Of a stretch of 64,000 bases of DNA, positions 30,221-53,800 are shown piece after piece; positions within the stretch are counted from its first letter, which is position 1; each line of letters opens with the position of its first letter. Source of the DNA: Octopus bimaculoides (Eukaryota). The stretch spans positions 15,378,607 through 15,442,606 of the forward strand of contig NC_068984.1 of the NCBI RefSeq assembly GCF_001194135.2, given 5' to 3'. A program made the translations under genes and the position numbers. The notes under the pieces are model-generated. The model was not told the DNA's origin, made no database searches, and saw nothing but the letters and a program-made list of their open reading frames with translations.

Positions 30221-30597
30221 TCCTATTACTCTTAAGAAAAGCCAGAGCTTATTATAATATACATATATATATATATACAAGATATATTTTTCTGATATTT
30301 TTCAGTTCCACCAAAATTGGTTCACACAAGTACAAGAATCTGACCGGCCGCCATCACTTTGTGCCAGTCACCATCGAGAATTGGGTGTTCTTAGACCCCA
30401 CAGAGCTGATTTTCTCCAGGAAAATCAGGATAACTGCAGCCCATATGAGAAATGAGCCCCGCAAAATGGAGTGACTGCTGCAGTCAGTGTCACTAACCAT
30501 TCTCCATGCCACTTAATTCTGTATACAACCTGCTACTCTCCCCCCACCACACTTTTTCCCACATTTGTTTCCTTGGTGAGTTATGGGCTGTTTTCCC

Positions 30598-30629
<32 letters not shown>

Positions 30630-30639
30630 CTTTTAATGT

Positions 30640-31125
30640 AGATTATTTACATTTGACGGACATTTGTCCTCATCGTTTGTTGTTAACATGTTTCGCCATC
30701 CTTCATCAGGTGTCTTGGGGAAAATTTCGAACCTGGGTTCTCATTCCTAAGGTATTTTTCGATGTTAATACTATTATTCAGGCCACTGCTTGGAATCAAA
30801 CTCGGAATCTTGGGGTTAGTAGCCCATGCTCTTAACCACTATCCCATATGGCCATGGGCATATGGCGTAGTGTTTAAGAGCGCGGGCTACTAACCCCAAG
30901 ATTCCAAGTTTGATTCCAGGCAGTGACCTGAATAATAATAATAACAACAACAACAACATTGAAAAGTACCTTAGGAATGAGAACCCAGGTTCGAAATTTC
31001 CCCAAGACACCTGATGAAAGCTGGAGAGTATCAGCCGCAACGTGTTAACAACAAACAAGACGAGGACAAATAGCCATCAAATGTAAATAATGTACATAAT
31101 TCCTCATCTCTTAAATATAGAACTC
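30640..31125. mobile_element. Palindromic head-to-head dimer of a tRNA-headed element with hammerhead-like cores
   Basis: 30640-30852 is the reverse complement of 30856-31095. Each arm has an A-box (TGGCGTAGTG/TGGGATAGTGG), a B-box-like AGTTTGATTCC, an (AAT)n spacer and GACAC-CTGATGA...G(A/C)AAC. Confidence 0.8.
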
Positions 31126-31239
31126 TACTTTAAATTTGTTTACTTTCTTTTCTTCCTGTTCAAATAATGTTACTAAAAACAAAGTTCAGTTTTAAAAAAA
31201 GAATATACAAATAAATACAATACACAAGAATTCTTTCAA

Positions 31240-31815
31240 ATTCTGGCAGAAGGCCAGCAATCTTAGGGCAGAAGGACTCAATTACATCAACCCTAGTACT
31301 AAACTCATATTTATTTTATCGACCCTGAAAAGATGAAAGGTAAAGATTGAACTCGCAACATAAAGAGTCAGACGAAATGCCACCATGCATTTTGTTTGAA
31401 GTGCTATCAATTCTGCTAGCACACTGCCTTAATAATAATGGTTTCAAATTTCAGCACAAAGCCAGCAATTTTGGAGGGGGGATCGATTACATCCACCTCA
31501 GTTCTCAACAAGTACTTTCTTTATCAACATCAAAAGGATGAAAGGCAAAGCCAACTCCGGCAGGATTTGAACTCAGAATGCAAAGATGGACAAAATGTTG
31601 CTAAGCATTTTGCCAGATCGCTTCAATAACAGCAGCAGCAGCAGCAATAATAATTTTGGCACAAGGCCAGGAATTTTGTAGGGAAGAGATAAGTCGATTA
31701 TAGCAACCTAAAAAGGGCGAAAAGTAAAACTGGTCTTGGTGAATTTGAACCCAGAACATAAAGAGCTGGAAGCAAACCTGTCACCAAGCATTTTGTTTAC
31801 CAGCTCACCACCTTT
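31240..31815 (-). mobile_element. Array of three diverged family-3 SINE monomers
   Basis: Three successive AAAGGATGAAAGG/GAACTC/TTCTGC(C/T)AGC-like blocks. Confidence 0.7.
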
Positions 31816-31891
31816 ACAACAACAACAACAACAACAGGGTGGAAGAAAAAAAAAGGAAAATGTGAATGTGATAAACTTCATGTACAAGTGT

Positions 31892-31897
31892 TTTATT
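31892..31897 (-). terminator. Candidate poly(A) signal for the Y2 isoform (another AATAAA at 32035-32040)
   Basis: AATAAA on the minus strand at the end of a SINE-free ~700-nt 3'UTR-like tract; SINEs resume just beyond it. Confidence 0.5.
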
Positions 31898-32595
31898 AAC
31901 ATTTTAATTTTATCGTACTGTACCTGTATTAGTATGGTTTCCACTGCATACTAATTGAGAAGCAAGAGTTTAACTTTTTTTTTTTTTTTTAAGTGAGATT
32001 TCTCATTTTGAACTCAGCATACTCAACAAGAAATTTTATTCTCACATTCTGTCAATACTGTTTGTCATCATAAAAAAAAAAAAAAAATATAAATAAAATT
32101 AGTCCAGTCCAGTTTTCTGCTCAAGCCTCGACCCACTCTATATTTAATAATGTCTATGTATGCACGTTTTTTTTTTCTTTTTTCATTGTGAATTTTTTTT
32201 CTTGGAGCCTATGATGGGAAAGATGTGGTGTAGAGAGGACATTTCTCTCTCTCTCTCATTATTTTGTACTGTACAAAGGAGGAAAACGGTCTTCTTTTTA
32301 CATTTCAAACTCATCCTCCACATTTTAGTTGAAAGGGTTAATTAAAAAAAAAATTTTTTTTGTAAATGTTAATAGCTATCTTAACAGTTTGAGATGAAAT
32401 TAAAACCTGACCACTAAATAGCTGTTAACGTGTACCTTACAGAACAAATTAGCAAACACAATTAGCATTGTATTACAACTGTTGTTCATCAGGAAGAAAG
32501 ACAGAGGGAAGAAGAGAAAACCAAAGGTGGTTGTTACCATTAGAAGACAATGCCAAGTCAGAGGTGCTTAATGTTGGGGAGAATTACTTTGTCCA

Positions 32596-32772
32596 TTATC
32601 TACTTAAACTATGTGACCTAGCACGTCCACCCAAAAAGCAGGACTTTTTAAAAAATGGATCCTTCAAAGCTTCTTTTAGTGTTATTCGCGCCAGGGGATC
32701 ATATCGTAGCATCTTCCAAATCAAATCAAACAGAAGCACGTGGTCCTCATTGTTGGGCTCCATTATGTACCG
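32596..32772 (-). CDS. CLK2: CLK distal terminal exon Y2 (58 aa): [41 protein letters not shown]...RARSHSLSR*
   Basis: ttttaatccag|CGG acceptor, phase 0; second copy of subdomain XI; TAA stop. Confidence 0.92.
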   Translation of the reverse strand, partial: RYIMEPNNEDHVLLFDLIWKMLRYDPLARITLKEALKDPFFKKSCFLGGRARSHSLSR

Positions 32773-35700
32773 CTGGATTAAAAAAAAACGAAAAGTAGAC
32801 ATTATTAATGTAAGTAAATAAGCATATGGCCATACAGGCAATTTTCTGAAAATATTATTATTGAGTTTCAATATTTTGAAGAATGAAATAGAGACTACAA
32901 TAAAAAGAGAAACTGTTGTCCAAACAGATTAAATTTTATATGCAATTGTAGGATATCAAAATATAAAGGGAACTTGCATTTATTTATCAAGCTTGATATT
33001 TTAAAGAATACGTTTTACTGAATAGAGTTTTTTTTTTTTTTTCCCCCCATCATTAAGAAAGAAAAGAGAAAAGAAATTAACATGAAATATATCTTCAGAG
33101 AAGTCAAGTCATGAGGTCATAACCATTAATATTGAAGAAGAGAAGAAGAGAAAAAAGGGGATAAAATCATTCAGTTCTGGATTTGATTTGATAAACATTA
33201 TGGAAGAAACAAAGAAAAAGACAAAGAGAAAAAGAAAAGAAAAGAAAAAAGTGAAAATTATTTCAACTCTAAAATCTTGTACTCTTATAAAACCCATGTA
33301 AAAGGTTTTCTTTCTATTGCAATACAATTGTTCCTTCCTAAACAATAAACAAACACATCTTTTATCTTTTACTGGTTTCAGTCATTAGACTGTGGCCATG
33401 CTGGAGCACCACCTTGAAGAGTTTATAGACAAATGAATCAACCTCAGTGCTTATTTTTTTTAAAGCCTGGCACTTATTCTATCAGTCTCCTTTGCTGAAC
33501 TGCTAAGTAACAGGGATGTAAACATAAAAACACCGATTGTCAAGCGGTGGAGAAAGGGCAAACACAGGCACATACACAAAGGTATATGATGGGCTTCTTT
33601 CAGTTTCCATCTACCAAATCCACCCAAAAAGCAAAACTGAGGCAGACACAGGCACAAAAACCAGTGAATTGTCTAAATGGTTCCCGAAAGTTTGAAACTG
33701 AATATATGCAGCAGCCGTGGAATCAACTGGCACTGCGGATACTTAGTACTGCTTCCAAGCACGCAGTTTCACAGTGATCCTCTGACCACTGTTTTGTTTA
33801 TTTTCTTTTGTCTTACAGTTTAGTATTTATGAGATTGTATGTATTCACCATTATCTACTATGTATAATTGTAAAGCAATGGTATATTTTATTGGTAGCTA
33901 ACACAGGTGTTCATATGACTGACCAAGTTGAAATTCATCTAATGTAGTTCCTGTGCATATGCCACAGAGCCATCTCCTCTTTCTTTGGGTGGTAATCAAT
34001 TTAACGCCACTACCTGAGCAGCCCTTGATTCATTGCAAATATTTAGACCAAGCCATGCTTCCAGTAGCAGTTATCATCACCTTATGTCACTGGCACCCTC
34101 TAAATCTTCCTATAAGTAAATGACCAATCTCAACTCGCAGGACAATCCTTCTTCCTCTTTTCTAACATCTGTGGACTCTGATCCAAACATCACATCTAAT
34201 TCACAAACCATACATCCTATTCCCCATAGACAAATCTCTCAACCTATATTCAGTCAACCTAACAATGTCCCTTACCTTCATACAACTCAGCACACATGTT
34301 GTCCCCATTTGAGACAGCTACTATCCTACTACACTCGTTACCTCAAAGGTGATGGAGATAACCATAAACAACCACCTTCTCTAACACCTTGAATCTTTTC
34401 CCCTCTTTAATGAATGACAGAAATTCATAAATCCAGATCTACTGGAAACATGTCACTCATCAGGGATGGACTTGATAGGAAAAGCGAGTGGATTGCCGTG
34501 ATCTACTAAGCTAAACTGTACAAACTAACAGAACAAATCCCTTTTTTTTTTTTAACGCACAAACACACACTTGCAAAGGCTGGAATCAATTTTCTTTTGT
34601 TTTTTTAATTCAGTCAAATCTATGGAGTAAATTAAGTTGGTACATTGAAGCATTTACTGAAGTATTATTAATGCATTAATTCCAATGAGGAATCCAAATT
34701 TGTATGAGGATTCAGTTATCCCAGCTATGTACTTGCTATATTACACTGTTTAAATAGAAAACAATGACGTTTCGTTGACTCAATCAATCACAGTCATATA
34801 AAATTAAATTTAATTTTACTGGGGTCTTTTTTTCTTGGTTAAACTGTGCATCCAAATGCTAAAAAGAACAGTATCCNNNNNNNNNNNNNNNNNNNNNNNN
34901 NNNNNNNNNNNNNNNNNNNNNNNNNNNNNNNNNNNNNNNNNNNNNNNNNNNNNNNNNNNNNNNNNNNNNNNNNNNNNNNNNNNNNNNNNNNNNNNNNNNN
35001 NNNNNNNNNNNNNNNNNNNNNNNNNNNNNNNNNNNNNNNNNNNNNNNNNNNNNNNNNNNNNNNNNNNNNNNNNNNNNNNNNNNNNNNNNNNNNNNNNNNN
35101 NNNNNNNNNNNNNNNNNNNNNNNNNNNNNNNNNNNNNNNNNNNNNNNNNNNNNNNNNNNNNNNNNNNNNNNNNNNNNNNNNNNNNNNNNNNNNNNNNNNN
35201 NNNNNNNNNNNNNNNNNNNNNNNNNNNNNNNNNNNNNNNNNNNNNNNNNNNNNNNNNNNNNNNNNNNNNNNNNNNNNNNNNNNNNNNNNNNNNNNNNNNN
35301 NNNNNNNNNNNNNNNNNNNNNNNNNNNNNNNNNNNNNNNNNNNNNNNNNNNNNNNNNNNNNNNNNNNNNNNNNNNNNNNNNNNNNNNNNNNNNNNNNNNN
35401 NNNNNNNNNNNNNNNNNNNNNNNNNNNNNNNNNNNNNNNNNNNNNNNNNNNNNNNNNNNNNNNNNNNNNNNNNNNNNNNNNNNNNNNNNNNNNNNNNNNN
35501 NNNNNNNNNNNNNNNNNNNNNNNNNNNNNNNNNNNNNNNNNNNNAAAAAAAAAAAAAAAAAAAAATCTTAAATAAATAATACAAATAATCTAATACACAT
35601 AAATAAGGAAAGTTATCGCTGAACATCTCGATGTCGAGAACTTTGCTTGCTTTCCTTGGAAAACAAAACAGAAAAATTATACAATATTTATTCATAATAT

Positions 35701-38700
35701 TTTAAATGAGAAATTCTTCTAATTTGGCATGCATATTTAGCTATGAAAATTTGCAATTGCAAGTAAAATTACAATGGCTACCTGCAAAGTACTAATGTAT
35801 TCACAGCAACTAGTCTGAGATAAACTGATAAGAAATATGGCATATTGAATAAATAATGTTCCTAAACAACATAGTTGACTATTACAGTAAATGATGTTCG
35901 AAGTGATAAGAAAGTATTTATGTAATCATGGCTGAGTGGCAACAAGTTTGCTTCCCAACCACATGGTTTCAAGTTCAGTACCAATGCATAGTGCCTTGGC
36001 CAAGTGCCTTCTACTATAGCCCCAGGTCAACCAAAGCCTTGCAAAAGGATTTGGTAGATGGAGACTGTATGGGTGTCACCATCATGTAATTGGTGTCATT
36101 TCTTTCCAACCATCCATGAAAATGCATAGGTTGGTGACAGGAAAGGAATCCAACCGAAGTAAAATCTGCCTTTAGCATTCTGATTACTCTGTGAGATGTA
36201 TTGCTTACATATTCACATTGTTTTGAATTAATCATGTATTATCTCATAGCTTTGAGATGTCAAGAATAACATTGTAGAGTAGATGTAAGAGGCTGGATTT
36301 CGTTATAAAACAGGTAGAACATCTGGGCTGGATATGACCAGTTTAACTGCTAAAGGTCTAACAAATTCTGTCCAGCACATATGAACATGGAAAAGTTAAT
36401 GTTAAAACAATGATGACATCTGGCTAATCCTGAAGCTATTTCTTATGATGATGATGATGATCATCATCATCATCATCGTTTAACGTCCGCTTTCCATGCT
36501 AGCATGGGTTGGACAATTTGATTGAGGACTGGTGAAACCTGATGGCAACACCAGGCTCCAATCTAATTTGGCAGAGTTTCTACAGCTGGATGCCCTTCCT
36601 AATGCCAACCACTCAGAGAGTGTAGTGGGTGCTTTTACGTGTCACCCGCAATATCATTAAATCATTCATTTGTAAAATATTGATTACATCCTAGTCTTCA
36701 TATGTCACTTTACAAAGATGGCAATTTCTATATGATTCTATTCATAATAAAATTAAAGGTAAATCTTGACATTTGTCAAGCATTTCAAACTCTCACCCAC
36801 CCCCAATATAGCTTAAGATATCTAATTCTACAATACAACAGATCTCTTTATTGCCAAAATCACTTGAAATTCCATAAGGAAACTACTCTAGATGTTATTT
36901 CCTGTTTGTTTTTTGTTTTTTCTCAAAGAGGATGATTCTGTAAATGTGTAAAGTTTCCATAGGTTAAGGCAGCTGCTTTTGTAGCATAAATACTATTCCT
37001 ACCACTATCAACCAATAAATAAAGACAACAGTAATAGTTGTGTGGATAAGGTGTTTACGTCGCAACCATGCAGTTCCAGGTTCAACTCCACTGCCTGTCT
37101 TCATGGGCAAGTATGTCTTTTATCATTGCCATGAGCTGGCTAACACTGCAAATGGAATTTGTTAAACAGAAACTGCTGTAAATGTGTGTGTAAAATTAAT
37201 ATTTGGCAGAAGTAACAGAGTGACTTAATGGCCAAGAGTTTTGTGCGTTATACACACACGTGTATACCTTTCACCAATATGTATGTGACAGCAAAATCCC
37301 AAGAAGCAGTACTTGTTAAAGTCTTTTGTGATATATGGTTCAGCAGTGAGTTAAAGGCACTCCCATGTCACTCACGCCCTCAAAAATGTGGTGAACCAGT
37401 GATTAGTTAATCTGAAAATCACTTGACTTTCAAATTGGCTATTCTATGAGAATGATTTAAAAGGAATAAGCCATATTGCTCACTGTACCTGTACATTACT
37501 TTTTACTAGTTTATGACAGCAGATGTTCTGTGTTCTCTATCAAAACAAAATTCTTGTTTTTGTACACCACCAAGCAAATAACCCAATCAAGACTTGATGC
37601 TTGAACAAGTCCTAGCCATGGTGGGGAAATCAATGAATAATGTGTGAATTTGAATTTATCCTTTTCACAGATGTAGTCTTGTGAAAGTTGTATACTTCAT
37701 AATGCACCACTCAGATGATCAACAACATATTGACCATCTTAATGTTCAAGCAACTCATTGTATTTCAGCAATGCAAGGCAATTATGAAAGCGAAACACAA
37801 GAGACAACAATGACAGTAAAATTACATTGAAACTGATTATAGAAAACATCACACAGTTTATATATAAAGTTGGTATGTGGAAAATAGTCTTGGTCACCCT
37901 GAGAGAATTATTGGTGCCAAAGTTTTAAAGAAAGCACAAAATCATTAACAGTGAGATTATGATTTCTATTCTTGCGAGCATCAACCATTTGCTAGAACTT
38001 ATATTTTGAGACTTCTCATTTAAAAATTATTGAATGTCACAGCTCAATACAGACTTTAGGTGGATTGGTTGCCAACAAAATTGTAATAAGAATCAAAATC
38101 ACAATCTTCCAACTGTTGATAATGTACAAGAAAATATTTTTACAGACTAAGTTTAGAATAAGAACATTTTAGGTTGATTAGCATAACTTTCGTCAAATTA
38201 ATAAAAAAAAATTATTTTCGACTGTGTGTGTGCGTATGTAAATATTAAACTGGAATTATGCTTTTAATTCAGTTTGCAACAACTGACTGTAATACAATGG
38301 ATGGAATAGTTTAATAGTTTTGACTCCATTTTACCATATTAATTTGAATACCTGTGCGAATAGAGATACTTCAATATTAAGAAAGAGAAATCTAAATGAG
38401 TATCTTTAAGTGTGTGATAATTAGGTGAACTACATGTGTATCTAGTCTGGTGTAGAAATGAGTGAAAGCAAAGCGTGTGGATGTATGCAAAGATGAAAGA
38501 AGAAAAAAATGGTTGGGTGGAATTAAGTAATGCACTGTTACAAGCTCCTAAGTCATAACTTCAAATTCAGGTTGTTCCCAAGTGCTTCTAAGTAAGGAAC
38601 TTTCTTTGCTCCATCCACCTTATTGTCATTAAGAGATACCTGATTTTCTGGGTTAGAGTCAAAATGGCTGATCCTCCGTTAATGAAAGGTCAAGCAACTG

Positions 38701-41156
38701 ACCATCAGATCAATATGAGGGGGTTAAAGGCGTCACAGTTTGTTGACAGTTATCTATTTACAAACTGTTATTATGTCTATGACACTCAACTCCAGCCAGT
38801 CCAAGCCACTGAGCTGTATGTAGACACCATGAAGAGATACATCTCACTGCTGTAAGCAGTAAGAAGTCTGTACCCTCAAATACTCTGCCAATAGTTCCAA
38901 ACTCAAACCTCAGGCAATCTCCTGGGGCCAATAGTTCTAATCATTTATTGATACACGAATTTGATTAAAAGTTAAGATATCCAATGTAAAACTGAAGTAA
39001 ATATTATTATTATTATTATTATTATCTGTATTCTGAATTGTTACAGTAATAAAAGAAAGACAATAAATATAGTAGCAACACAAACAACTTGAAATGACAA
39101 CCTACACCCCACCCCTCCAACAGATTATTTTTCACTGTTAGTAGAGATAATTAGAGGTAATAGTGATACTAGTGGAAGAGATAGCTGCTGTCATTACCAT
39201 GAAATGTGAAGTGAAGTGAATACAAGTGGTGGGTTGGGTGAAAATGGGAGAATAACATGCTCAAGTTTAAAGTCCCATGCAACTATTAATGTTGGAGATG
39301 ATCACCTGGCAAGTAGCTGTAGCTGACATCAGATTTGCCTGGACCCTCACTCTTTGTTTTCACACAGTCACGGTCACCATGGTTTTCAGATGATAACTCA
39401 CTGCCCTGGTAACTTTTGCGCCGGTCCAGCATCCTTGGTTCCTTCGGCACGGATGGCTTGTGCTCTAGATGTGGTTGCTCTTTTAATAAGGGTTTGAAGA
39501 AAGGGTGAGCAAGTGTTTCCGCAAGAGTTATCCTGTAATGAGGCTCATACTCAAGCATCTTTTCAATGAGATCAAAGAGCTGAAGATGTTGGATCCCTTT
39601 GTCTCTTAAATAGTGCTGTAAGGAAGAAAGAGGGAGGCACACGTCACATAGAGGGGATTGGTAAAAGGTTATTGTATCTAAACTTGGTGATGTTGCCCAT
39701 TCTGCAAAGCTGTAATAGGTCAGTTTACATCAATCATTAAAAACATCCAAGCTATTTTAAATTAGTGTGACACTACCAAAATGATGAAAGCAGGCTGTTA
39801 ATAAAATTTCCCTGAAATAGCAATTGGTGTAAATAGCTTTGACAGTATTCTTTAAACACTGAGATGATATGTTCAAATTTATACATCTTAAAAGATTTCT
39901 ATTTTATTTAGAAATAAATATAAAATGGTTTTCTACAAAAATCAAGACTGACAAGAACTAAGGTATAAAAAAAAAAAATTTTACAAAAAAAAATAATAAT
40001 AATAATAATACTAATTTTACAAAGAAAAAAATAAAAGTTGAGCAGAAGTTAGCTAACTCTAAAAAACATATCACAATAAAAAATATTCTGTGAAAATCTG
40101 CTCTTTCTAATAATAGTTTTCTCAAATATTACCTTTAACTGTAATAAGAATAAATTTCTAATAAACATGTAAATTTTTAATATTCTAGATGAAAAAGAAC
40201 ATTATTTCCACCCATCCAATTTATTTATTCTTTATCTAATAGAGAAATAGCTAACATAACTAAAACTTTTGGTAGCATGTTTGCTTTCCTTGGCCGTAGC
40301 AACAGTTATCCAGGTATGATATTTTTAGAACCACTTAGAAAAGCTGCAAGATGTAATAATATCTACACACATGGTTTTGGAATTACTGATTCCTAGAGCT
40401 AGCTACTAAATACACTTGGTTACATTTGTTTTCAAGGTGTACTAAACTAATATGGAAGGAGGGAAGGTGTAAATAAGCAAATAGTATTATTTCAGTCATC
40501 AATATTTTACTATTCATGCGCACAATCACATTAGTACCTGAATATTAGTAACTTGGAATATCATTTCATCTCAACTAATACCACAACAATCAGTTTTCTT
40601 TTTTCACTTTTTATATACCTTCATCACATTGGTACAAATATGAAAACTTCAAAGGACGGACATAGCAAATGAAATATTAGTCTAGGCAAGGTTTTGTTTT
40701 CCAAGCAACATATCCACATAGTTTACAATATTTTCCCATGAAAAATGAAGGGGACATTAAAGATAGACACTGCTAATAAGCATACAAAAAGGACACACAT
40801 GCTCACTTCAAAAATGGGTTTAAATGGTTTTATGGTATGTATGTCAGTATATATAAATTGACTAGTAATAATGGCTCTACATCTTTGCTTCTTGCATTAA
40901 CTACCATAATGAAACAGAAGTGTATCTACAGAATAAGTTCATCATTCTTTTTTTTTATTATTATGAACAATGCATCTCAAATGTTACTCTGATATAATCC
41001 TTGACAGAAACACAAATGATACTTTCTCCCAAGAAAGACTCAAATGAAATTTCTACAAGAAAGGTTTAAAAAAAACAACAACAAAATAATCATGAACAGG
41101 ATGGATGGATGGATNNNNNNNNNNNNNNNNNNNNNNNNNNNNNNNNNNNNNNNNNN

Positions 41157-41189
<33 letters not shown>

Positions 41190-44100
41190 TTATGTGTTTC
41201 AGCCAAGTGGCTGCGGTCATGCTGGTGCACCACCGTGGGTGCACTATATATATATAGTTAAATATAATATAGACACAAAAGAATATGATACTAGTAAAGG
41301 AATGTTTCTCTAACTGAAAATATGAAAACATATATGGAGGAGGGGGAGTTCAAACATGACCTGATCCTAAGGAGGTGGATAAGTTCTTCTGGTATAAAGA
41401 TTTTGATATTGCTAAAACATATTACATCTATATATGTGATGTAATAAGCAAACCTGGGGACAACAAAGATTCAACAGTGAGATAAAAATAAAAGAGAACA
41501 ATGCATGTGGATAGACTGGGGAATGTAAATTGAGAAGTTTAGCATGAAAGAAGAGAAGGGAATTTACCCTTTGCAGAAAGAACGCCAACAATTTTTGCAT
41601 TCAAATTTTTGAAATAAACATTTTTTCTAGAGAAAACTTTAGACATCTTAACTCTAGGATCAGTTAACAGAAAGACATTATTCAAATGGCGTTAGGAAGG
41701 GCATCCAGCTGTAGAAACTCTGCCAAATCAGACTGGAGCCTGGTGTTGCCATCCGGTTTCACCAGTCCTCAGTCAAATCGTCCAACCCATGCTAGCATGG
41801 AAAGCGGACGTTAAACGATGATGATGATGATGATGATGATATTGAGCAGGGTGAACAACAAATTTGAGAATGAAAGGAATTACTTATCAAAAACATGCTA
41901 ATTTGGTTGCATACTGCAAACAGAAAATTAAACTTCAGAATTTTCAGATTCAATTAAATAAAATCATGTTCTCTTAAATTTTTCAACTGAATCAGTAAAG
42001 GCTATGATAAAAAGGGCAGTGACAGAACGATATGGATGGTCACCAGAAAGAATGGAGATGTTCAAAGATTAACATAGTCTTGGTGACCTGAAATATACAG
42101 GCTACCATTACAATAATAAATTAAGCCATATTATTTAAATAAGAATCGACATCACAAATATACGTATGACTAGTTTAATAATGCTAAATGGCAATGTATG
42201 GCTCAATATAACAGGTAAATTGACATAAAACCTACAAGTACAGAAATATTGACTACAGTATTACAATCATAATTGCAATCTATATTAGTATCAAAATAAT
42301 CTTCACACTAATTTGAAATGAAAATATTTAACTATCATAAGTATAGCTGTTTCTAATAACTTTATAAGGATTCTAATGTTATATCCTTCTAAATATCGAC
42401 ACCCAAGAAAAATGGACATTTAGATAAAGAAGTACAAAATGAATACAAATGGACAAGAGAGCCTGTATGTTTGGCGAGTTAAACAAGAGCTTTCAGGTAC
42501 GTAAATTCTAACTATTTAGAAGAAGGGAAGAAAAAGAAAAAAAACAGACTAGAGAGAAGGTACCCCATGAAAAATAGTGTTTGATTCATCTTTTGCTTAT
42601 TACATCATTTGTTCCATCAGTCATATAGGATTTATAAGTTGCACAAAACACATAATCTTTACATTTTAAGTATTCTAATCAAAGGAAAAATTTCTTTTAA
42701 TCATGAAATATTCTAAATTGTCTTCCTGTGGGGCAATTAATATTTTAAAAAAAAGACAAATGGATGCAAAGAAAAAGTTTTATGAATCTGTAAATGGGCT
42801 CTGTATAATGAATTTTAAATGGAATGTCAAAAATATAAGTGACGAGACGAGTCATGCTATTTGACAGTAAAAACATTTATCCTCACATAAAAGACGATTT
42901 TTGTTAAATAAATGATTTACTGTTATTGTTTGCCATACACAAGTTCAGAAGTTGTCAATGTTGCAAAAAATATAAGGTATTCTGTTTAATTATATATTAA
43001 CTCGAAACAAAGTTTAAGCCGCTAGCTTGTGAAAAGTAAAAGCAGTAGCCATGCGAAAATGGCAAATTATTAATCATTTGAAAATAAAAATAGCTTCTAA
43101 ATATGCAAAACAATGGAACAAAATTCATTTAAAAAGACAATTGGGTGATTACATACAATGAAGTTATTTAAAAACACGTTATAACATAAAACAGTAAAAA
43201 TACATGTATATAAAAGAGACAAAAAAAAAAACAAGAGAAAGGTTTAAAAAATAAAATCACACAAAAATTTTTAATTTGATTTCTGTGCAAGAAGAAAATA
43301 ATGTAAAAAAAATTTTTCATTTAGCCCCCATGCTTTTTGAAATAAACAGAAACATGCCAAAGAAAAAATTTATTGTGGGAAAATGTGTAATAAAAGTCAA
43401 TTTTGTTTTTTGTTTTTTTTTTAAATTTTAGANNNNNNNNNNTGTTTAAAATCTTGAATTTTCTGGGAGCAGGAGATGTTAGACAAAAAAAAACTAGTTT
43501 TTCAGAAACGAGTCCAACATTCGGAGGGGCCTGAATCTATTGGTTTTTAACTTGTTGGATCTGGAGGAAGGAACAAGGCACACAAATTCCTAGAATAGTG
43601 GAATTGATGCCAACACCTGTGAGAAACATAATCAAGCTGCAAGTTCCAGAGGGTTAACTTTAAGGGGACAGAAAGGACAGAGCACAGCAAGGATGATGGG
43701 AAAAGGAGAGGTGAGTGAGATGGGAGTGCCTGAGTGAGGCAGAGAGGCGACAGTACACATGTGGGCCAGAGGCTAGAGTGAATAACTTTATGCCAATCAA
43801 TCAGGTGGCTCTTTCCTGAATGTAGTCTGGGAAGGATGTTTATAATGTTAAGACAATTTGAAATACAGGAGTAAGCCTTACCTCCAAAATAAACAATACA
43901 AGAGAAATTGTTGGGGGAAAGCAGATTTGTTATACTAGTAATTAATGGGTTAATGAGGTGTGGGGGATATTAGGATGGAATTAAAAGTTCTAAGTTGAAA
44001 TAAGCCTCCTTTGTAAGCAATGAAAACCTTGTCACAGTCAATTAAGATCAACCAAAAACATGAAGTTGAAACAGAAGGGTTTAAGTTCCAGATACTAACT

Positions 44101-47100
44101 CAAGGTGAATATAGTGAAAATTAGAGCATAAGTAACGAGTAGAATGTTACAAACGTTAATTAGAAAAACATTCAGATTCATTATTAAAAACTGAAAGGGG
44201 CTCAATATTATGTATGCAAATATATTCAATGGATATAGATTAGCTTGATTAATGCTACAAACAATTTTAAAATCTACCTCTTGCATTAGTACAACCAACA
44301 GTCCAATTGGTTAAGGACCAAAGATTGTCTGAATAGGCCTTGAGAAATACTAGTATGTCTTAGGGGCAGAGTAAATAATAGCTCAATGTCTGTTGCAGTA
44401 AGCGGATAGTAGTTTTATTGATAACAAAACCTGTTAGATACTGGAGTAATTTCAAATCAACAAAGACAACTTTTTCTTACAATATAAAAAGGGAGGAACA
44501 ACCTATAATTCATTGGATATGAACACAAACTAGAACCAAAATGAAAGTGGATTGAGGAAGTAACTACATCCAAGAGGATTAGTTGTTGCAATAAAGACAA
44601 GGATATGATGTGTATAGATTATGCATGCTAAGAAAAGAAAAATAAAACAGGGCAAAAAAAAAAATCGAGAAGTATGCTAATATGCATATCCTCCCAGCCC
44701 ACAGAAGTATGGAAAAATGCATATTAAGTTGCTGTTATTGCTGCTGGCAGAGCTAAAAGACATGAGATAATTAAAAAGTAGAATTACTAGTCTAATTGTA
44801 TTGATACAAGTGTTACATATGTTATTAACATTAGAGCTAAAAACAATAGAAGTATTGATTGTGCAACAAGCTCTAGTGTTTTGCTCATTATATGCACTTG
44901 CACAAACACATTCTGCGGCTGTACATGTACATATATATATATATATATATANNNNNNNNNNNNNNNNNNNNNNNNNNNNNNNNNNNNNNNNNNNNNNNNN
45001 NNNNNNNNNNNNNNNNNNNNNNNNNNNNNNNNNNNNNNNNNNNNNNNNNNNNNNNNNNNNNNNNNNNNNNNNNNNNNNNNNNNNNNNNNNNNNNNNNNNN
45101 NNNNNNNNNNNNNNNNNNNNNNNNNNNNNNNNNNNNNNNNNNNNNNNNNNNNNNNNNNNNNNNNNNNNNNNNNNNNNNNNNNNNNNNNNNNNNNNNNNNN
45201 NNNNNNNNNNNNNNNNNNNNNNNNNNNNNNNNNNNNNNNNNNNNNNNNNNNNNNNNNNNNNNNNNNNNNNNNNNNNNNNNNNNNNNNNNNNNNNNNNNNN
45301 NNNNNNNNNNNNNNNNNNNNNNNNNNNNNNNNNNNNNNNNNNNNNNNNNNNNNNNNNNNNNNNNNNNNNNNNNNGTATTCTGTTTACATATTAAGTTGTT
45401 GCCTTCATTCCTAACATAAACACAAATCCTAGTGAGGTTTATAAATGACCCATGTTACTTGACTGATACCATTTTATCAGTCCCAGAAGACTCGGCAGGC
45501 TTTGTAAAGAATCATAACAATATACCACAAGGCATTTGTCTTAAACTCATCTAATTTCTGCCAATCCACTATCTGGAACAATCGAATGTTAAAAGGAGAT
45601 TTGTAAATTACAAATCCACTATGTTTACAAAAATTGTAAAATATTAACTTTGATTCCCCTCCTCCTCCTCCTCCCATAGGTTAAACACATTTTGAAAAGG
45701 AATCAGCTAAATAACTTGTTACTCACCTTAAGTGGTTTGCAATTTTCCCGAATATACCGCCCAGATGAGTTTTTTTCATCCCAGTCCAGTTTCCCATGGT
45801 AGAAATACTTGCTTTTTCTTTGGAGATAAATATGGGGAGTGTGGGGTTAGGGATTAGAAAAACAAACAAACAAACAAAGCCGTATGAGCTAATGAGAATA
45901 GCCATGCAGCATGCTACCCAAGTCAAACTACATTCAGTTCAATGGAAACAACTAATAAAAGGTAAGTTATATTAGTATTGAAACAAATTATGAATGCTGG
46001 CAGCAAAAAGAAAAGTGGTAAACTAATCAACTAAAGAGACAAAAATTTATGGGGTGGGAACTTGGGTTGTTACCAAGAGCTTGTACTAAATATGCTGGGA
46101 GATTAATAAATAACAAATTAGAAGTTTGGTCAGAAGAATAAAAATACAAACAGAACTTGCAGGCAGATTCAAGGATCCACAAAACACATGCATTGCCCCA
46201 CTGGCAACTACTACCAAATTTAAATGGCTAACTGAAGAAACAATTGAAAGGAAATTTGAACAAGCAAGTAAACAACATTAGTCCCCAGTGAAAAGATTTT
46301 AAGTGCTGAGCTTAAATAAAAAAATTGTGAATTAAGATTATTGAAAGAGTACATGGAAAACTATCTAGTCAGGAATGGATTAAAATAGAGTTAAACCAAA
46401 ATATAACTATTCTAGAAATATCAGTGTCACCTCCCAAAGAAGGCTTACAAGATAAGATTTTTACTTCTTCAGATATAACCTTAGAAAATTTTGGAAAAGA
46501 TCACCTTGAGAAAATAATTTGTATATTTTAGGACATTTTTTTTATTAAGTTGACACATAAATAAATGAAACTTGGCAATTTTGTTTATCCCCCAAAAAAC
46601 GAAGCTTGTTTTCAACGAAGAGATTTTACATTAGAAAGAGTTTAAGTTTAGAAATGTATTTATTACCTACAAGACAACACACCAAAAGTGTTGTGAACAA
46701 ATTAGTTGTTACCTGCTGGCACATTGCCCAAACATCATACACTTCAGTGGTTTCTTACAGTTGGAAAATAGTAAGTCATGCACTATAGTGCACTTATGGT
46801 AGTAGTTACAGAGAAGGCTGAGCATGTACTTACATAAAGTGGTTTACAGTTCTCCCTTACATATCTCCCAGCAGAAGTAGTCGAGTCCCAATCAAGGCGA
46901 CCATGCCAGAAGTAATTTGTTCTTAAAACAATAGGAACAAAATGACAAGTGAATTTTATTATAATTAAAGTTTACTTCAGGGTTATTATAATTTGAAAAT
47001 AAATCATCATTTATGAATTTTCTTTAAACTTGTGTTTCAAAATCAACAATGTCTTTGACTCATGTAATATTTACTCAATGTAAATTGCACAAGATGCCAC

Positions 47101-47745: not shown

Positions 47746-50700
47746 TTTAACAATAATTTACAATATTAATATTCTAAAGTTGGACTGATTCCAAGAGTTC
47801 ACTGAACTACTTTTAGAAATAAATACCTATGTATTTCTGCTGCACATCAAACATAAATATCAATTACAGGAAAATTTCTTTATGAAATTTGGACTAATTA
47901 AATTAGGGAGAAAGATAATAATAAAAAGAAACACCAATATGAAATGTCATGATACACTTTTGAAAATATAATTGCTTAACAATTAAAGTAATATATGTTG
48001 TAATAAATGTTAATGATTCATTATGCAACACCCCACCCCACCCAATATTACTGTCAAATTTAAAGTTAGAAAAAATATATTTATAAAATAATCACAGTTT
48101 ATCAATTAAAATATTATTTCACCTATTTAAGTTAGATTTTTGTTCTATAACCATCCTTTCTAATGTCCAATATTATTAACTTTAAGTCAATAAGCTTACC
48201 GAGATCTTTTTGCCATCCGATATGGTATACTGCCCAGTATCCGTTCCATCATTGCCAAATGCTCCTTATTGTCATGTGTCTAACCCAAAACAAAAAAGTA
48301 AATGTCAAAGCAGCCAATACAAGGTTAATTGTGTGTTCACACTAAATATATTTAAGACAAAATACAAAGATTAACAAGTATAATATATATTTTAAAAAAA
48401 TAACATTTTGCTAAGAAGTAGAATTAAAAAACAAAAATACATGTCAGCATGTCTATGTATAATTTCAAGAAAATATACAAAACTAAATCAATAATGTTGC
48501 CTATTCTATTGACTATAGAACAACAGTAATAGTCATAATGGTTTGCAAGAATTACAGTAAAATCAAATTCAGGATAAAATTCATATAGAGGCTGAAAAGA
48601 ATACTCGCAAAATAGCAAATAGCAAGTAAGTGTAACTTTGACAGGCAAAAAGTTTAATTAATAAACATCATACTATTATATAATTTAATAAACATTAAAA
48701 AAATAAGCATTAAAGCAATTTACCTGAAATAATGTGTATCCTGTGTATAGCTCAAACATGATACAACCTATACTCCACACATCACAGGGTTGAGACCAAC
48801 CTAATTCTAAAATTACAAAGAGAAAAATATCAGTTATGCAGAAAATTATTGCAGAGACACAGAGATATCATCTTTTTTTAATGTCTGCCTTCCATGTTGG
48901 CATACATATAAATACAAAGAAGTATTGATAGATAAATACAAATCATTGCAAGAAAAAAAATTCTTAATGTAAGGGCTGATTAAATCTAGCTTTACTTCTT
49001 ATTTAAGATCAAGGTCAGTCTTTGTATGAGACAAAGTCAGCAAAGAAAATTTCATTGAAAGGTTTCAACCAAGATTTATGGAATTTAAAACTAACATCAT
49101 TTAATGTTCGTATTCCATGCTGGCATGGGTTGGGTGGTTTGACAGAACTTGCTCCAGTGACTGCTTTGGCATGGTTTCTACAGCTACTATGACGTCCTAG
49201 CTCATCAGGCTACATTTGTTCTCAAAACCTCAAGTATACATATAGTTGATGTTCACTTCCAGTTATTGTAGCAACTTAACCCAGGTGAAGAATCTAAGTT
49301 GGTACACAGATCTCTCTCTCTCTTCAGCCAGGTAACCTTGTACTTCTTCAACAGCAAGAAACCTGTTTCTGTGTCTGTCTCACTATAGCCTTTCATCATC
49401 CGACACAAGATCACTTCCTCTTGAAAGTGTTTTTTTTTTTTTTTTTTTTTTTTTGTCTTGCAAGTACTTGGTGACCCTATCAGTGCAGGTGCTACTTAAA
49501 AGCACCCAGTCCACACTGTAAAGTGGTTGGTGTTTGGAAGGGCATCCAGCTGTAAAAACCTTGCCAAAACTGACCTTAACTGTACTTGTGCCACGTAAAA
49601 AGCACTAAGTCCACTCTGCTGAGTGGATGGTGTTAGGAAGGACAACCAGCTGTAAAATTCCTGCCAAAACAGTCACAGAAGTCCGGTGCAGGCTTCTGCC
49701 TGGCCGGCTCTTGTGAAATCATCCCACCCATGCTAGCATGGAACACGAACATTAAACAACGATGATGATGATGATGATGATGAATCACCAAAGCTGCAAT
49801 ACTTAAAACCAGGTAAATCTATCTGTTGAGAGCTAAGTGTATTGATCTCAGAAACAAGACTTACAGTTGCACTGAACTCGTCAGCAAGTTGTCCCATTTA
49901 TGCTCACAAAAAAAGGTAAATGATTCATAACAACTTTAATGCTCAAGTATCATTAGAATCATTACATCAGCATCTGGTGAATCCAGAATGTGGGCTCCAG
50001 CAGGGCAACATTTTCAATAGGGAACCAACCACATTCCAAAGTGAATGTGTATTGCTTTTACCAAACTAACTAAGTTTTATTCCAAAAGTTTCAAATCTAA
50101 ACCCATTCAAATTAAAGTAATTTCACTACTTCAACTGTAATATGGAACTTCTACTGGAGAAACCACAACACTCCAGAAAGTACAATTAAAATAACAAGCA
50201 ATAAAGACTAACACTTCATATAAGTGGGTGGTGGTGATAAAACATTTTTATATTTTCAAAATGTCCAAGACCCATTTTCCAAACTTTCACCATTTAATTC
50301 TTTTTAAGTTCTAAGTTTCTGAATGGATGGATAGAGTATCAATGATGAATCAGTCATGTACTGGCAATTGAATTGTGTCTGAAGTTGAGTTCATTTATCA
50401 AGCTCATCATTTTCGATCGATACTTCTCCAGCTGTTACAAATTAATTCCTTTTGTATCGTCTGAGAAACTATCTATAAAACTGCAATAAATGTAAACAAG
50501 GCTAGCAATTCCCAAGTAAAAGAAAACCATAATACACTTACCCAAAATAACTTCAGGAGCTCTATAATGCCTCGTTGATACAATAGTGCTGTGGTGTTCA
50601 TGATCAAATGTTGCAGATCCAAAGTCTATTAATCTTATATCTGTATTTTTTACTCTCCGCATATCTCGCCTCTAGAAAATGTAAAATACGAAACAAAGAT

Positions 50701-50802: not shown

Positions 50803-53800
50803 GATGCAGATAAAAACAATATTACCTTTTTAGCATTATATGATACTTCAAAATCGGAGTTAACGAAAAGTATGTTTTCTGGTTTCAAGTCTGTATGCGT
50901 GAGCTGGTTCTCATGGAGGACTAAAAAAGAGGGGAAAAGGCTATTTACTGTTTTGTACAAACACACAGAGATTATAACTTTATAATCAAAATAAACTAAC
51001 CATTTAATAATTCTAACCATTTTAGTTTGAACGAATTAAATATTTGCTTACTGAAATAAAGAAAAGACCCATATGGGAAAATTTTATTGTTAAATTATAA
51101 TCTAAGAATGAAAACTAATTCAATTGGTAAGATGTAAAATAAATGTATTCATCAAAGTAAAACTCCAGGAATAAGTCTACGTTAATCAAACCTTTCTCAT
51201 CAATCTGTCCTTTCTGCCACCACTACAACCGCTAGTACCCTACAGAGACACCTGGGTGCATATCCCACCCCCACCATTTCTCATCCAACTAACCTTATCT
51301 TCCCAGAACAGCAACCCTTCCTACCTATGCCTTCAACCCCGCCTTGAGCCTCAGGACTCACAAGTCCAGTTAGCTGGTTTCAATGGCACATGAGTAACTG
51401 AGATTACAATACTCTCCCTGAATGGGACGCCAGTCCATGGTAGGGGCTCAAGGCCGGCAATTTTTTTGAGAAAAGAGGAAGTCAATTACATTGACCCAGT
51501 ACTAGTCTGGTATTTTATTTTATCAGCCCCCCCCCCCCCCNNNNNNNNNNNNNNNNNNNNNNNNNNNNNNNNNNNNNNNNNNNAAGGGGATGAAAGATAA
51601 AGTTGGCCTTGGTGAGATTTGAACTCAAAATGTAGCGAACCACAAGAAATGCTTAGCATTTTGTCCAATATGGTAACAATTCAGCCAGCTCACCAATGTT
51701 TTCCCTATGGATATCAACTGACAGTTATTCAAGCTAAACAGCAATCATATCAATTTCAGTCTTGCAAAGCATTACAAAAGTCACAGATACACCTTGTTCC
51801 CCTGACTACATGAAAAATGAAAAGGTTCATGGATTATAAAAACAGAAATTTATTGAAACTTACAATTTACTGCATAGCACAACTGATAGGAGATATTTCG
51901 AACTTGATCGAGAGGATATGGATAATAAGTGTTGTCTTTCTGCAGAAGAAAAGTTTTTAAAATTGCATTAAGTAACATGTGCAGACGTATGCAGACTAAT
52001 AATATAAATCTCACATCTTAGGCATATTACCCACACCACCACCAATTAAAATTAAAAGATAAAAAAAAAACAAAAAAAATTTAAATATTAAACATAGCAA
52101 ATTAAATTTGGTAAAAGAACTCATTTTTCTGTAACTTACCAAAAAATCAAATACACTAAGACCAAGCATATCAAATGCTATACACATATGCCCATGATAA
52201 TCGAACCAATCCAGCATCCGTACACACAAACTGAAAAAGAAATTATAAATTTAAACTTACAAACTGTGTCTAGACAAAGAGAAAAAGAAGAAAAAATCCT
52301 TATGCAATAATCCTATTCACTCCCCAGACCTTTATTTCAAAAGTTTTTGGAAAATTTTACATTTCAGATTCAACTCTTTCATATTTATGTATGCACATGC
52401 AAACAAGTTGCAATGTTTCCTGCATGAATGCAACGCATGAACTGCATGTTTAAGACATAATTGAGCATAAATAAATTAAATAATAATATAAATTTTACAT
52501 TTTGTATGGGACTGTTAAAAGGAGAGTATATACATACTGTATGTATTCTGTTTACAGCTTTGATTTTTAAAATATGCTCTGACATAAGTAGCAGGGAGTT
52601 TACCATGATGCATAATGCATCTATGTACAAAGAGAAGCTGAAGGTTCACCTCTGGTTAAAATCTAACTTTAAACAGTTACAAAAAAAAATAATAATAAAA
52701 TGTGTGTGTGTGTGTGTGCGCGTGTACGTGTGCATATACATACACACATATACACACACATGCAAATTGAGTTGATGCCAATCCATTAAATACAAGACTT
52801 GTATTGATTTATTCTATATTGTTCAGCTGACATTTTACTTATGGAATCAGATTAATGGTCTGGGTTGAACTGTGACTTGTTTTTTTTGTTTTTTTTTAAA
52901 TATTAAAATTACTAATAGATAATAAAACTAGGATTAAAGAAAAAAAAACGTATCCCCACCTTGTACCAACTAATTCTTCCAGCTGTTTCTCTTTCAGTTT
53001 ACCTAAGTTTACTACAATTACACCAATACTCTGCTACTTGGAATTTTCTACCTTAATCTTACTTCAAGCTATTCTCCTCCTGCTATGACTTGCTTTGCCA
53101 GAGAGATGAAGAAAGTCACATATATCCCCCATACACCACCACCCCACTACTAATCTATCTTGAACATCATTTTCCCTTCAAACAGTAATTTTCTAAATGA
53201 AACACAAATTTAGTCATTACCTTGCAGTGTATTTGGATACACACACACACACACACACACANNNNNNNNNNNNNNNNNNNNNNNNNNNNNNNNNNNNNNN
53301 NNNNNNNNNNNNNNNNNNNNNNNNNNNNNNNNNNNNNNNNNNNNNNNNNNNNNNNNNNNNNNNNNNNNNNNNNNNNNNNNNNNNNNNNNNNNNNNNNNNN
53401 NNNNNNNNNNNNNNNNNNNNNNNNNNNNNNNNNNNNNNNNNNNNNNNNNNNNNNNNNNNNNNNNNNNNNNNNNNNNNNNNNNNNNNNNNNNNNNNNNNNN
53501 NNNNNNNNNNNNNNNNNNNNNNNNNNNNNNNNNNNNNNNNNNNNNNNNNNNNNNGACGAAACTCTCATAAAATACATGTCCCATAAGAAAATTCTTTTGG
53601 AAAAATGAGCAGAAAAATCTCATAATGAAAAGCTCTTATTAATAACAATCACCAACAACACTTCAATGGTTGTGTGGTCATTCTCAATGTGCTAAAAATA
53701 GCAACCATCTCTTTAATCACACCATACTGCCTTAAGAAAGAAGGACACACTGGGCAACATAGTTCTAGATATACAAAATGATGACTGAAATGCCAGACCA

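Follow-up and report, generated by a model that had tools for sequence, protein, structure and literature searches.

The last two coding exons of the octopus CLK2 gene are each present in two versions. We analysed a stretch of 64,000 nt from Octopus bimaculoides (contig NC_068984.1, positions 15,378,607 to 15,442,606; hereafter the window), whose minus strand carries the 3' two-thirds of this Doa/LAMMER kinase gene. Four exons in the order X1, X2, Y1, Y2 very probably form a module in which X1 and X2 exclude each other by reading frame, Y1 is a frame-shifting cassette, and four kinase C-lobes share a single 3' untranslated region (3'UTR). What is directly observed is how the exons are arranged and framed, that Y1 joins Y2, and that the exons are conserved and under purifying selection. 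The original prediction for this stretch concerned Y1 and Y2, and it overlooked the duplication of the preceding exon (X1/X2). The exons and the sequences next to them, in window coordinates, are the following.

46834 to 46921, minus strand: exon X1, 88 nt, present in transcripts L001, L002 and L006.
45727 to 45817, minus strand: exon X2, 91 nt, used in public models P0177, P0297, P0300 and P0312.
39306 to 39615, minus strand: cassette exon Y1, 310 nt (3n+1), subdomain XI (HYLRDKG…) and a basic tail of ~62 residues with RRKS; limits from transcript L002, 99% identical.
39286 to 39305, minus strand: read-through continuation of Y1, GDHLQH and then TAA at 39288-39286; intronic in all transcripts and models found.
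32596 to 32772, minus strand: Y2, the coding part of the shared terminal exon, subdomain XI and the ancestral RSHSLSR end; from translation, transcripts and models.
32193 to 32595, minus strand: shared 3'UTR, of at least this extent; the alignment of L002 to the window reaches 32193.

In the mechanism that we propose, the paired exons, in the order given above, would go back to old tandem duplications. When Y1 is included, the last helices of the kinase fold and a disordered basic tail with the RRKS motif would come from Y1, and its length of 3n+1 puts Y2 out of frame, with a stop after 8 codons in the last exon. When Y1 is skipped, Y2 would be read in frame and would supply the same helices with the ancestral …RxRSHSLSR end. 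One gene would in this way yield four kinase C-lobes, either X exon being paired with either Y exon, and all of them would have the same 3'UTR.

Duplication of the last two coding exons

Both Y exons lie on the minus strand, are entered in phase 0, and encode kinase subdomain XI followed by different tails, as the original prediction had proposed. Their acceptors are cttacag| at 39615 (Y1) and aatccag| at 32772 (Y2). The translated cores are 65.6% identical over 32 amino acids and match each other by tblastn in the window with an E-value of ~1e-9, and at this level of similarity the likeness is not one of chance. Y1 keeps the key residues of subdomain XI, the Arg of RITL and the HPFF motif, as in other CLK/Doa sequences, and it also has a length of 310 nt in a squid genomic contig (L008). 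The resemblance proposed between the end of Y2 and the C-terminus of Doa holds as well: the …RARSHSLSR tail is close to the …RERSHSLSR end of tephritid fly Doa and of many arthropod, brachiopod and nemertean CLK/Doa proteins. Judged by this motif, the Y2 tail is the ancestral end. We rejected a wider labelling of X2/Y2 as canonical and X1/Y1 as derived, which came from a comparison with human CLK1. The closest solved structure is human CLK2, with an E-value of ~1e-40 for X1-Y1 and X2-Y2 alike; since CLK2 structures score both alike, only the tail motif marks Y2 as ancestral.

X1 and X2 are 65-68% identical in amino acid sequence and lie on the same gap-free contig. The two X exons, like the two Y exons, are homologous neighbours that are entered in the same phase. 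Both X exons depend on a single base carried over from the CG|gtaagc donor at 48200, and inclusion of both, or of neither, shifts the reading frame (computed from the window). With both included, translation ends prematurely, 52 or 362 nt ahead of the last junction. The frame thus makes X1 and X2 mutually exclusive.

All four X/Y combinations occur in public octopus models. Examples are XP_014781440.2 for X1-Y1, XP_014781432.1 for X2-Y1, UniProt A0A0L8IAH8 and O. vulgaris X10 for X1-Y2, and O. sinensis XP_029635633.2 for X2-Y2. When the four isoforms are rebuilt from the window alone, all of them stop inside Y2. In every model and transcript a single copy of each pair is coding, one X exon and, for subdomain XI, one Y exon. 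An mRNA can contain both Y1 and Y2, with Y2 then out of frame.

Y1 is spliced into Y2

In the transcripts and models found, Y1 is an optional internal cassette exon and not a terminal exon. The four informative RNA-derived contigs (L001, L002, L006 and L007) all join Y1 to Y2, through the donor TTGCCAG|gtgatc (…TACTTGCCAG|gtgatc) located 18 nt upstream of the literal Y1 stop. L002 is a Logan contig (SRR3401912) of 2059 nt, 98-99% identical to the exons of the window. L001 comes from a JGI metatranscriptome and L006 and L007 from another; these three are squid-like, from a more distant cephalopod. Y1 is likewise spliced to Y2 in 20/20 of the Y1-containing public models that we read (O. bimaculoides, O. 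vulgaris, O. sinensis and Argonauta hians). No protein ending in …LPGDHLQH* is found among the four contigs and these 20 models.

After Y1, Y2 is read in the +1 frame as AVHNGAQQ (8 codons) and ends at a TGA at 32749-32747, 23 nt inside the last exon. A stop of the type that leads to nonsense-mediated decay lies more than ~50 nt upstream of the last junction; with Y1 included, the stop is 23 nt downstream of that junction, inside the last exon, and decay is therefore not expected for the Y1 forms. Because Y1 is spliced into Y2, the 3'UTR is common to both forms, and the kinase-coding sequence of Y2 is untranslated when Y1 is included.

Y1 and Y2 had been predicted to be alternative last exons, each with its own stop and a downstream AATAAA, so that the 3'UTR would be exchanged along with the tail. 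The alternative subdomain XI and tail are borne out. The exchange of 3' ends is not, given a common 3'UTR in the four contigs and 20 models. Literal stops do exist for both exons (TAA at 39288-39286 in the Y1 read-through, TAA at 32598-32596 in Y2), as do poly(A) hexamers downstream (at 38949 for Y1, at 32148 and others for Y2), but the Y1 stop is intronic in all transcripts and models, and a separate poly(A) site in use after Y1 is seen in none of the four contigs and 20 models, which all continue into Y2. AATAAA/ATTAAA occurs at ~2.1 per kb on the minus strand, and the hexamers are therefore weak evidence for poly(A) sites.

The squid-like transcripts also contain a third Y1-like exon, Y0, between X1 and Y1 (L006 ~1440-1630, JGI 3300018952). 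Y0 carries an in-exon stop, far upstream of two junctions. A search for a third Y-type exon in octopus found none.

Selection, conservation and age

Compared with the squid-like transcripts, the ratio of nonsynonymous to synonymous substitution rates (dN/dS) is 0.08-0.10 for Y1. For Y2, taken in its own frame, it is 0.11-0.18, although Y2 belongs to the 3'UTR of those transcripts. By this measure both Y exons are coding and under purifying selection. A comparison of O. bimaculoides with O. vulgaris gives 99-100% identity for the four exons (X1 100%, Y2 99.4%), 96.8% for the shared 3'UTR stretch and 88-96.5% for introns. The top of the intron range is the 1-kb X1-X2 intron (96.5%, versus 88-93% for other introns).

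Against a median of 93 identical bases per 100, some intron stretches match at 98 or more of 100 between the two octopuses; on the minus strand they are located at 46300-45800, 43200-42900, 40600-40400, 39850-39616 and 35900-35650. Several of them contain GCATG, and we find no open reading frame (ORF) or kinase similarity in them.

The order X1-X2-Y1-Y2 is also present in the gapless loci of O. vulgaris and of the bivalve Mactra antiquata, and in the gastropod Elysia chlorotica, where two short N runs fall outside the X1-Y2 interval. Elysia X1 is identical to octopus X1 in 28/29 amino acids. Models of the bivalve Ruditapes include isoforms of the X1+Y2 type and of the X2+Y1 type. The brachiopod Lingula has X1 and X2 with a single Y, and a nemertean model has an X1-type exon. 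The arthropod and vertebrate sequences that we retrieved have only X2-type and single Y-type exons. Among the sequences retrieved, X1-type exons are confined to lophotrochozoans and Y1-type exons to molluscs. The Y1 group is monophyletic in neighbour-joining trees (HYL[RK]DKG, with a one-residue deletion), as is the X1 group (YFWHG).

The comparison with insect and mollusc CLK/Doa C-termini that had been suggested for dating the duplication shows it to be ancient, with Y1/Y2 shared by bivalve and gastropod. The presence of X1/X2 in the brachiopod and of X1 in the nemertean places the X pair before the molluscs, and the presence of Y1/Y2 in cephalopods, bivalve and gastropod makes the Y pair at least as old as their common ancestor. 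Outside cephalopods Y1 takes other forms. Mactra Y1 has an in-exon stop, where the annotated gene ends; Elysia Y1 has a long ORF of more than 230 codons, and a 666-residue product is called there (L010 38466-40625). The ancestral Y1 may have been a true alternative terminal exon, and the cephalopod cassette would then be a later change. In Elysia we also observe two 100% identical copies of Y2, 2.3 kb apart (L010 43340-43567 and 45635-45862), either a recent duplication or an assembly duplicate.

Candidate control of Y1 inclusion

The intron that follows Y1 starts with a conserved block.

39256 to 39305, minus strand: conserved intron block (octopus and squid) that follows the Y1 donor and contains UGCAUG at +25 (39281-39276) and GCAUG at +46 (39260-39256); from a three-way alignment and motif counts.

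Its first ~30 nt, conserved between octopus and squid, read GTGATCA(CTG)TCTCCAACATT…TTGCATG. The UGCAUG is at +25 in octopus and +28 in squid, and the second GCAUG at +46 and +53, respectively. The background on the minus strand is 0.28 per kb for TGCATG and 1.0 per kb for GCATG. Rbfox bound downstream of an exon favours its inclusion. The motif bound by Rbfox proteins is GCAUG (PMC11874969). As a hypothesis, the (U)GCAUG pair would be a candidate for Rbfox-type splicing enhancers that promote Y1 inclusion; the likeness to Rbfox-dependent cassette exons, with two GCAUG motifs within 55 nt downstream of the Y1 donor, is a resemblance only. Near the X exons, GCATG occurs once at +53 of X1 and twice, at -97 and -90, of X2. 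Hypothetically, this layout would favour X1 with Y1, and X1 with Y1 is the combination in all four RNA contigs. The conserved block could alternatively reflect a minor read-through isoform, GDH(C)LQH*.

Y1 is also flanked by a pair of 154-nt inverted repeats (36454-36607 and 41687-41840), ~5 kb apart, 95% complementary and similar to short interspersed elements. If the pair forms a duplex in the pre-mRNA, it could enclose Y1 and might influence exon looping, back-splicing or RNA editing. At the corresponding O. vulgaris sites neither copy is present, and the pair does not belong to the conserved mechanism.

Alternative readings

Several points weigh against the four-exon module as described. 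A direct X-to-Y2 junction is seen in no RNA contig, and the case for Y1 skipping is made by predicted models (P0298, P0304 and P0312) and by purifying selection on the Y2 frame. The read-through codons GDH(C)LQH* are kept between octopus and squid with an in-frame 3-nt indel, which fits a minor Y1-terminal isoform too; in squid, contig L008 allows the corresponding read-through, GDHCLQH*. The neighbour-joining trees use ~30-45 residues and carry no support values. Two scans of metagenomic contigs for the X-to-Y2 junction or the Y2 start, in a collection that does not include the known metatranscriptome contigs, gave 7 unrelated chance matches and do not bear on the module either way.

The read-through codons bear on the best of the alternatives, in which Y1 and Y2 are true alternative last exons: Y1 would read through to the TAA at 39288-39286, be polyadenylated near the AATAAA at 38949, and have a different 3'UTR. 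That stop and that hexamer exist in the window, the read-through ORF is conserved with its in-frame indel, and the Mactra and Elysia Y1 exons suggest that the ancestral state may be a terminal exon. We nevertheless consider this unlikely for the octopus. Such an ending is found in 0/4 RNA contigs and in 0/20 Y1-containing public models, all of which splice Y1 to Y2. The conservation runs past the read-through stop into the UGCAUG motif, so coding alone is no explanation for it, and at the background frequency of AATAAA/ATTAAA a single hexamer 337 nt downstream means little.

Mammalian CLK kinases regulate their own splicing, as in the case of CLK1 exon 4. With this precedent and the frame shift that Y1 imposes on Y2, inclusion of Y1 might be non-productive or regulatory, a poison-like exon that tunes the kinase level and gives no distinct functional protein. 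This is very improbable. The position of the stop, 23 nt inside the last exon, lacks the usual trigger for decay. Y1 retains the RITL Arg and HPFF and matches human CLK2 as well as Y2 does; its dN/dS is that of a constrained coding exon (0.08-0.10), and it is kept in cephalopods, bivalves and a gastropod.

That a paralogous CLK gene or a second haplotype was scaffolded in across N gaps, as the 14 N runs in the window and the placement of Y1 and Y2 on different scaffold contigs might suggest, is next to impossible: the same four exons stand in the same order in the gapless O. vulgaris and Mactra loci and in the Elysia locus, X1 and X2 share one gap-free contig, single RNA contigs hold both Y1 and Y2, and the copies are only ~65% identical and hence not haplotypes.

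Gene, locus and assembly gaps

The other mapped exons of the gene, and the gap between the Y exons, are the following.

62138 to 62082, minus strand: GEGTFGK exon, from a tblastn map.
50918 to 50829, minus strand: HTDLKPEN catalytic loop exon, from a tblastn map.
From 50671 onward, minus strand: DFGSA…APEVIL exon, from a tblastn map.
48200 to 48279, minus strand: constant exon, 80 nt, LAMMER signature, phase-2 donor CG|gtaagc; from tblastn, sequence reading and transcript mapping.
34877 to 35544, no strand: assembly gap of 668 N within the Y1-Y2 intron; from the comparison with gapless O. vulgaris.

The gene is identified as CLK2 by residues that match the O. bimaculoides CLK2 models exactly (…PRMLDRRKS…, …KKSCFLGG…). 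The window is 100% identical, Ns included, to chromosome CM046604.1 of GCA_001194135.2. The kinase domain is of the CMGC type, has the HTD loop, and is closest to the CLKs; Pfam PF00069 is recorded on the gene models. The LAMMER signature in helix alpha-G is present, encoded by the exon at 48279-48200. The N-terminal RS-rich domain is outside the window and present in models of the same gene (P0303 and P0178), and in the O. vulgaris locus (L004) it is located at 30259-43795. By these sequence features the gene is a CLK/LAMMER (Doa-type) dual-specificity kinase.

No exon touches the gap at 34877-35544, and the reading frame is therefore unaffected. The gap is still present in the newer O. bimaculoides assembly. 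L004 has zero N and is collinear with the window; the gap flanks map to it in the same order and orientation (window 35547 to 88644, window 34876 to 89317). By this collinearity across the gap, Y1 and Y2 are parts of a single locus and stand there in the order and orientation that the window shows. The O. vulgaris counterpart of the gap has 672 nt, versus the 668 N estimated. It is AT-rich, of low complexity and contains microsatellites, and we find no kinase-like ORF in these 672 nt between the gap flanks.

Next to the gap, at 35613-35654 on the minus strand, a short ORF encodes a peptide after a ccaag acceptor-like site. In O. vulgaris the region is 97.5% identical over 121 nt, with the stop kept as TAG, and the peptide recalls CLK C-terminal ends. 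As an extra terminal exon it was rejected: it is absent from all transcripts and models, and a search for a donor of compatible phase found none.

A second gap, at 53262-53554, explains an anomaly in the models. The window lacks the exon for the beta3 lysine and helix alpha-C, whose O. vulgaris position (L004 70485-70601) maps into this gap. Model XP_014781440.2 lacks the beta3/alpha-C residues because of the gap, and in this respect it is not a real isoform. The O. bimaculoides models of CLK2 suffer from assembly gaps in general, and caution is needed in reading them.

Other parts of the gene vary too. Between beta2 and beta3 of the N-lobe, a 42-nt alternative micro-exon at 56031-56072 (minus strand) adds an RS-rich insert. 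Octopus models differ in whether they include it, and a squid-like transcript (P0179) has a similar one. Upstream of the window range, O. vulgaris has at least three alternative N-termini: the RS domain, MKVDVLTAYKEW…, and a short MGDEIRWGGHKQQ start, the alternatives being located at L004 58479-58517 and 47843-48046. The MGDEIRWGGHKQQ start is used by transcript L002, and an M[KR]VDVL… start is also found in bivalve models.

What the exons encode in the kinase fold

In the crystal structures of CLK1 and CLK3, the X region comprises the two-strand sheet of the MAPK-like insert, a conserved Trp, and the CLK-specific helix alpha-H (PMC2667211). The Trp packs on the LAMMER helix, and helix alpha-H covers the docking groove of the SRPK type and buries the LAMMER motif (PMC2667211). 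The Y exons supply the alpha-I region of the kinase fold and the tail.

We built an AlphaFold model of the X2-Y1 isoform P0177 with a 40-sequence alignment (mean pLDDT 70.7, pTM 0.70). The X2 segment is modelled with strands around 296-301 and a helix at 308-316, and Y1 with helices at 329-341, 352-356 and 359-367. In the Y1 tail (residues 377-432, with RRKS at 386) the pLDDT falls below 50, and this part is probably disordered. Because X corresponds to the alpha-H/MAPK-insert surface and Y to the alpha-I region and tail, the isoforms would differ in docking or in (phospho-)regulation.

Relation to known systems

Exon substitution inside a kinase domain is known from JNK (exon 6a/6b) and from p38-alpha, with its alternative exons. 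Exons 7A and 7B of FYN (FynB/FynT) are another case of tandem-duplicated exons that substitute for each other inside the kinase domain (PMC9741552). The octopus exons resemble these three systems in that homologous neighbouring exons encode the same piece of the fold, one of them is coding per mRNA, and the duplications are ancient and under purifying selection; in all of them the swaps are thought to tune docking or regulation, not catalysis. Two features differ. Octopus CLK2 has two consecutive duplicated positions, interleaved as X1-X2-Y1-Y2, and its Y1 and Y2 share an mRNA, with exclusivity brought about by the frameshift and the early stop in Y2. In Drosophila pip, a tandem duplication produced mutually exclusive homologous terminal exons (cited in PMC9013439). 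There too, duplicated 3' coding exons give alternative C-termini, and Y1 of bivalves and gastropods may work in this manner. The cephalopod Y1, in contrast, has an internal donor and splices into Y2, with a shared poly(A) site and 3'UTR.

With human CLK1, CLK2 and CLK3 and with Drosophila Doa, octopus CLK2 shares the LAMMER signature motif, the HTDLKPEN loop, the MAPK-like insert and helix alpha-H, and Y2 ends in the protostome-wide …RSHSLSR motif of fly Doa. It differs from the arthropod and vertebrate CLK/Doa sequences retrieved in having more than their X2-type and single Y-type exons. The known isoform diversity of Doa is N-terminal. Our literature searches found no paper describing a duplication of C-terminal CLK/Doa exons in any animal. 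The kind of event, substitution of tandem-duplicated exons, is known, and the isoforms are already in automatic annotations. What is unusual is the interleaving of two adjacent duplicated positions, the exclusivity of Y1 and Y2 by frame shift, and the depth of conservation in a kinase that controls splicing.

As a wider and tentative proposal, to which we give somewhat less than even chances, the exons would form a mollusc-wide, two-position CLK swap module that predates the split of cephalopods, bivalves and gastropods and makes four kinases with different partners or regulation, and cephalopods would have turned a terminal Y1 into a frame-shifting cassette controlled by an Rbfox-type factor.

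The cephalopod Y1 would offer a clear example of an alternative terminal exon turned cassette that still gives an alternative C-terminus, by means of its 3n+1 length and a stop in the shared last exon. Through their phosphorylation of SR proteins, CLK kinases set splice-site choice. A conserved swap of CLK-specific surface elements and of the C-terminal tail would be a natural experiment on their role, which even human CLKs have not made clear. If the module works as proposed, it could act as a tissue-specific switch of the splicing programme, because CLK itself controls splicing.

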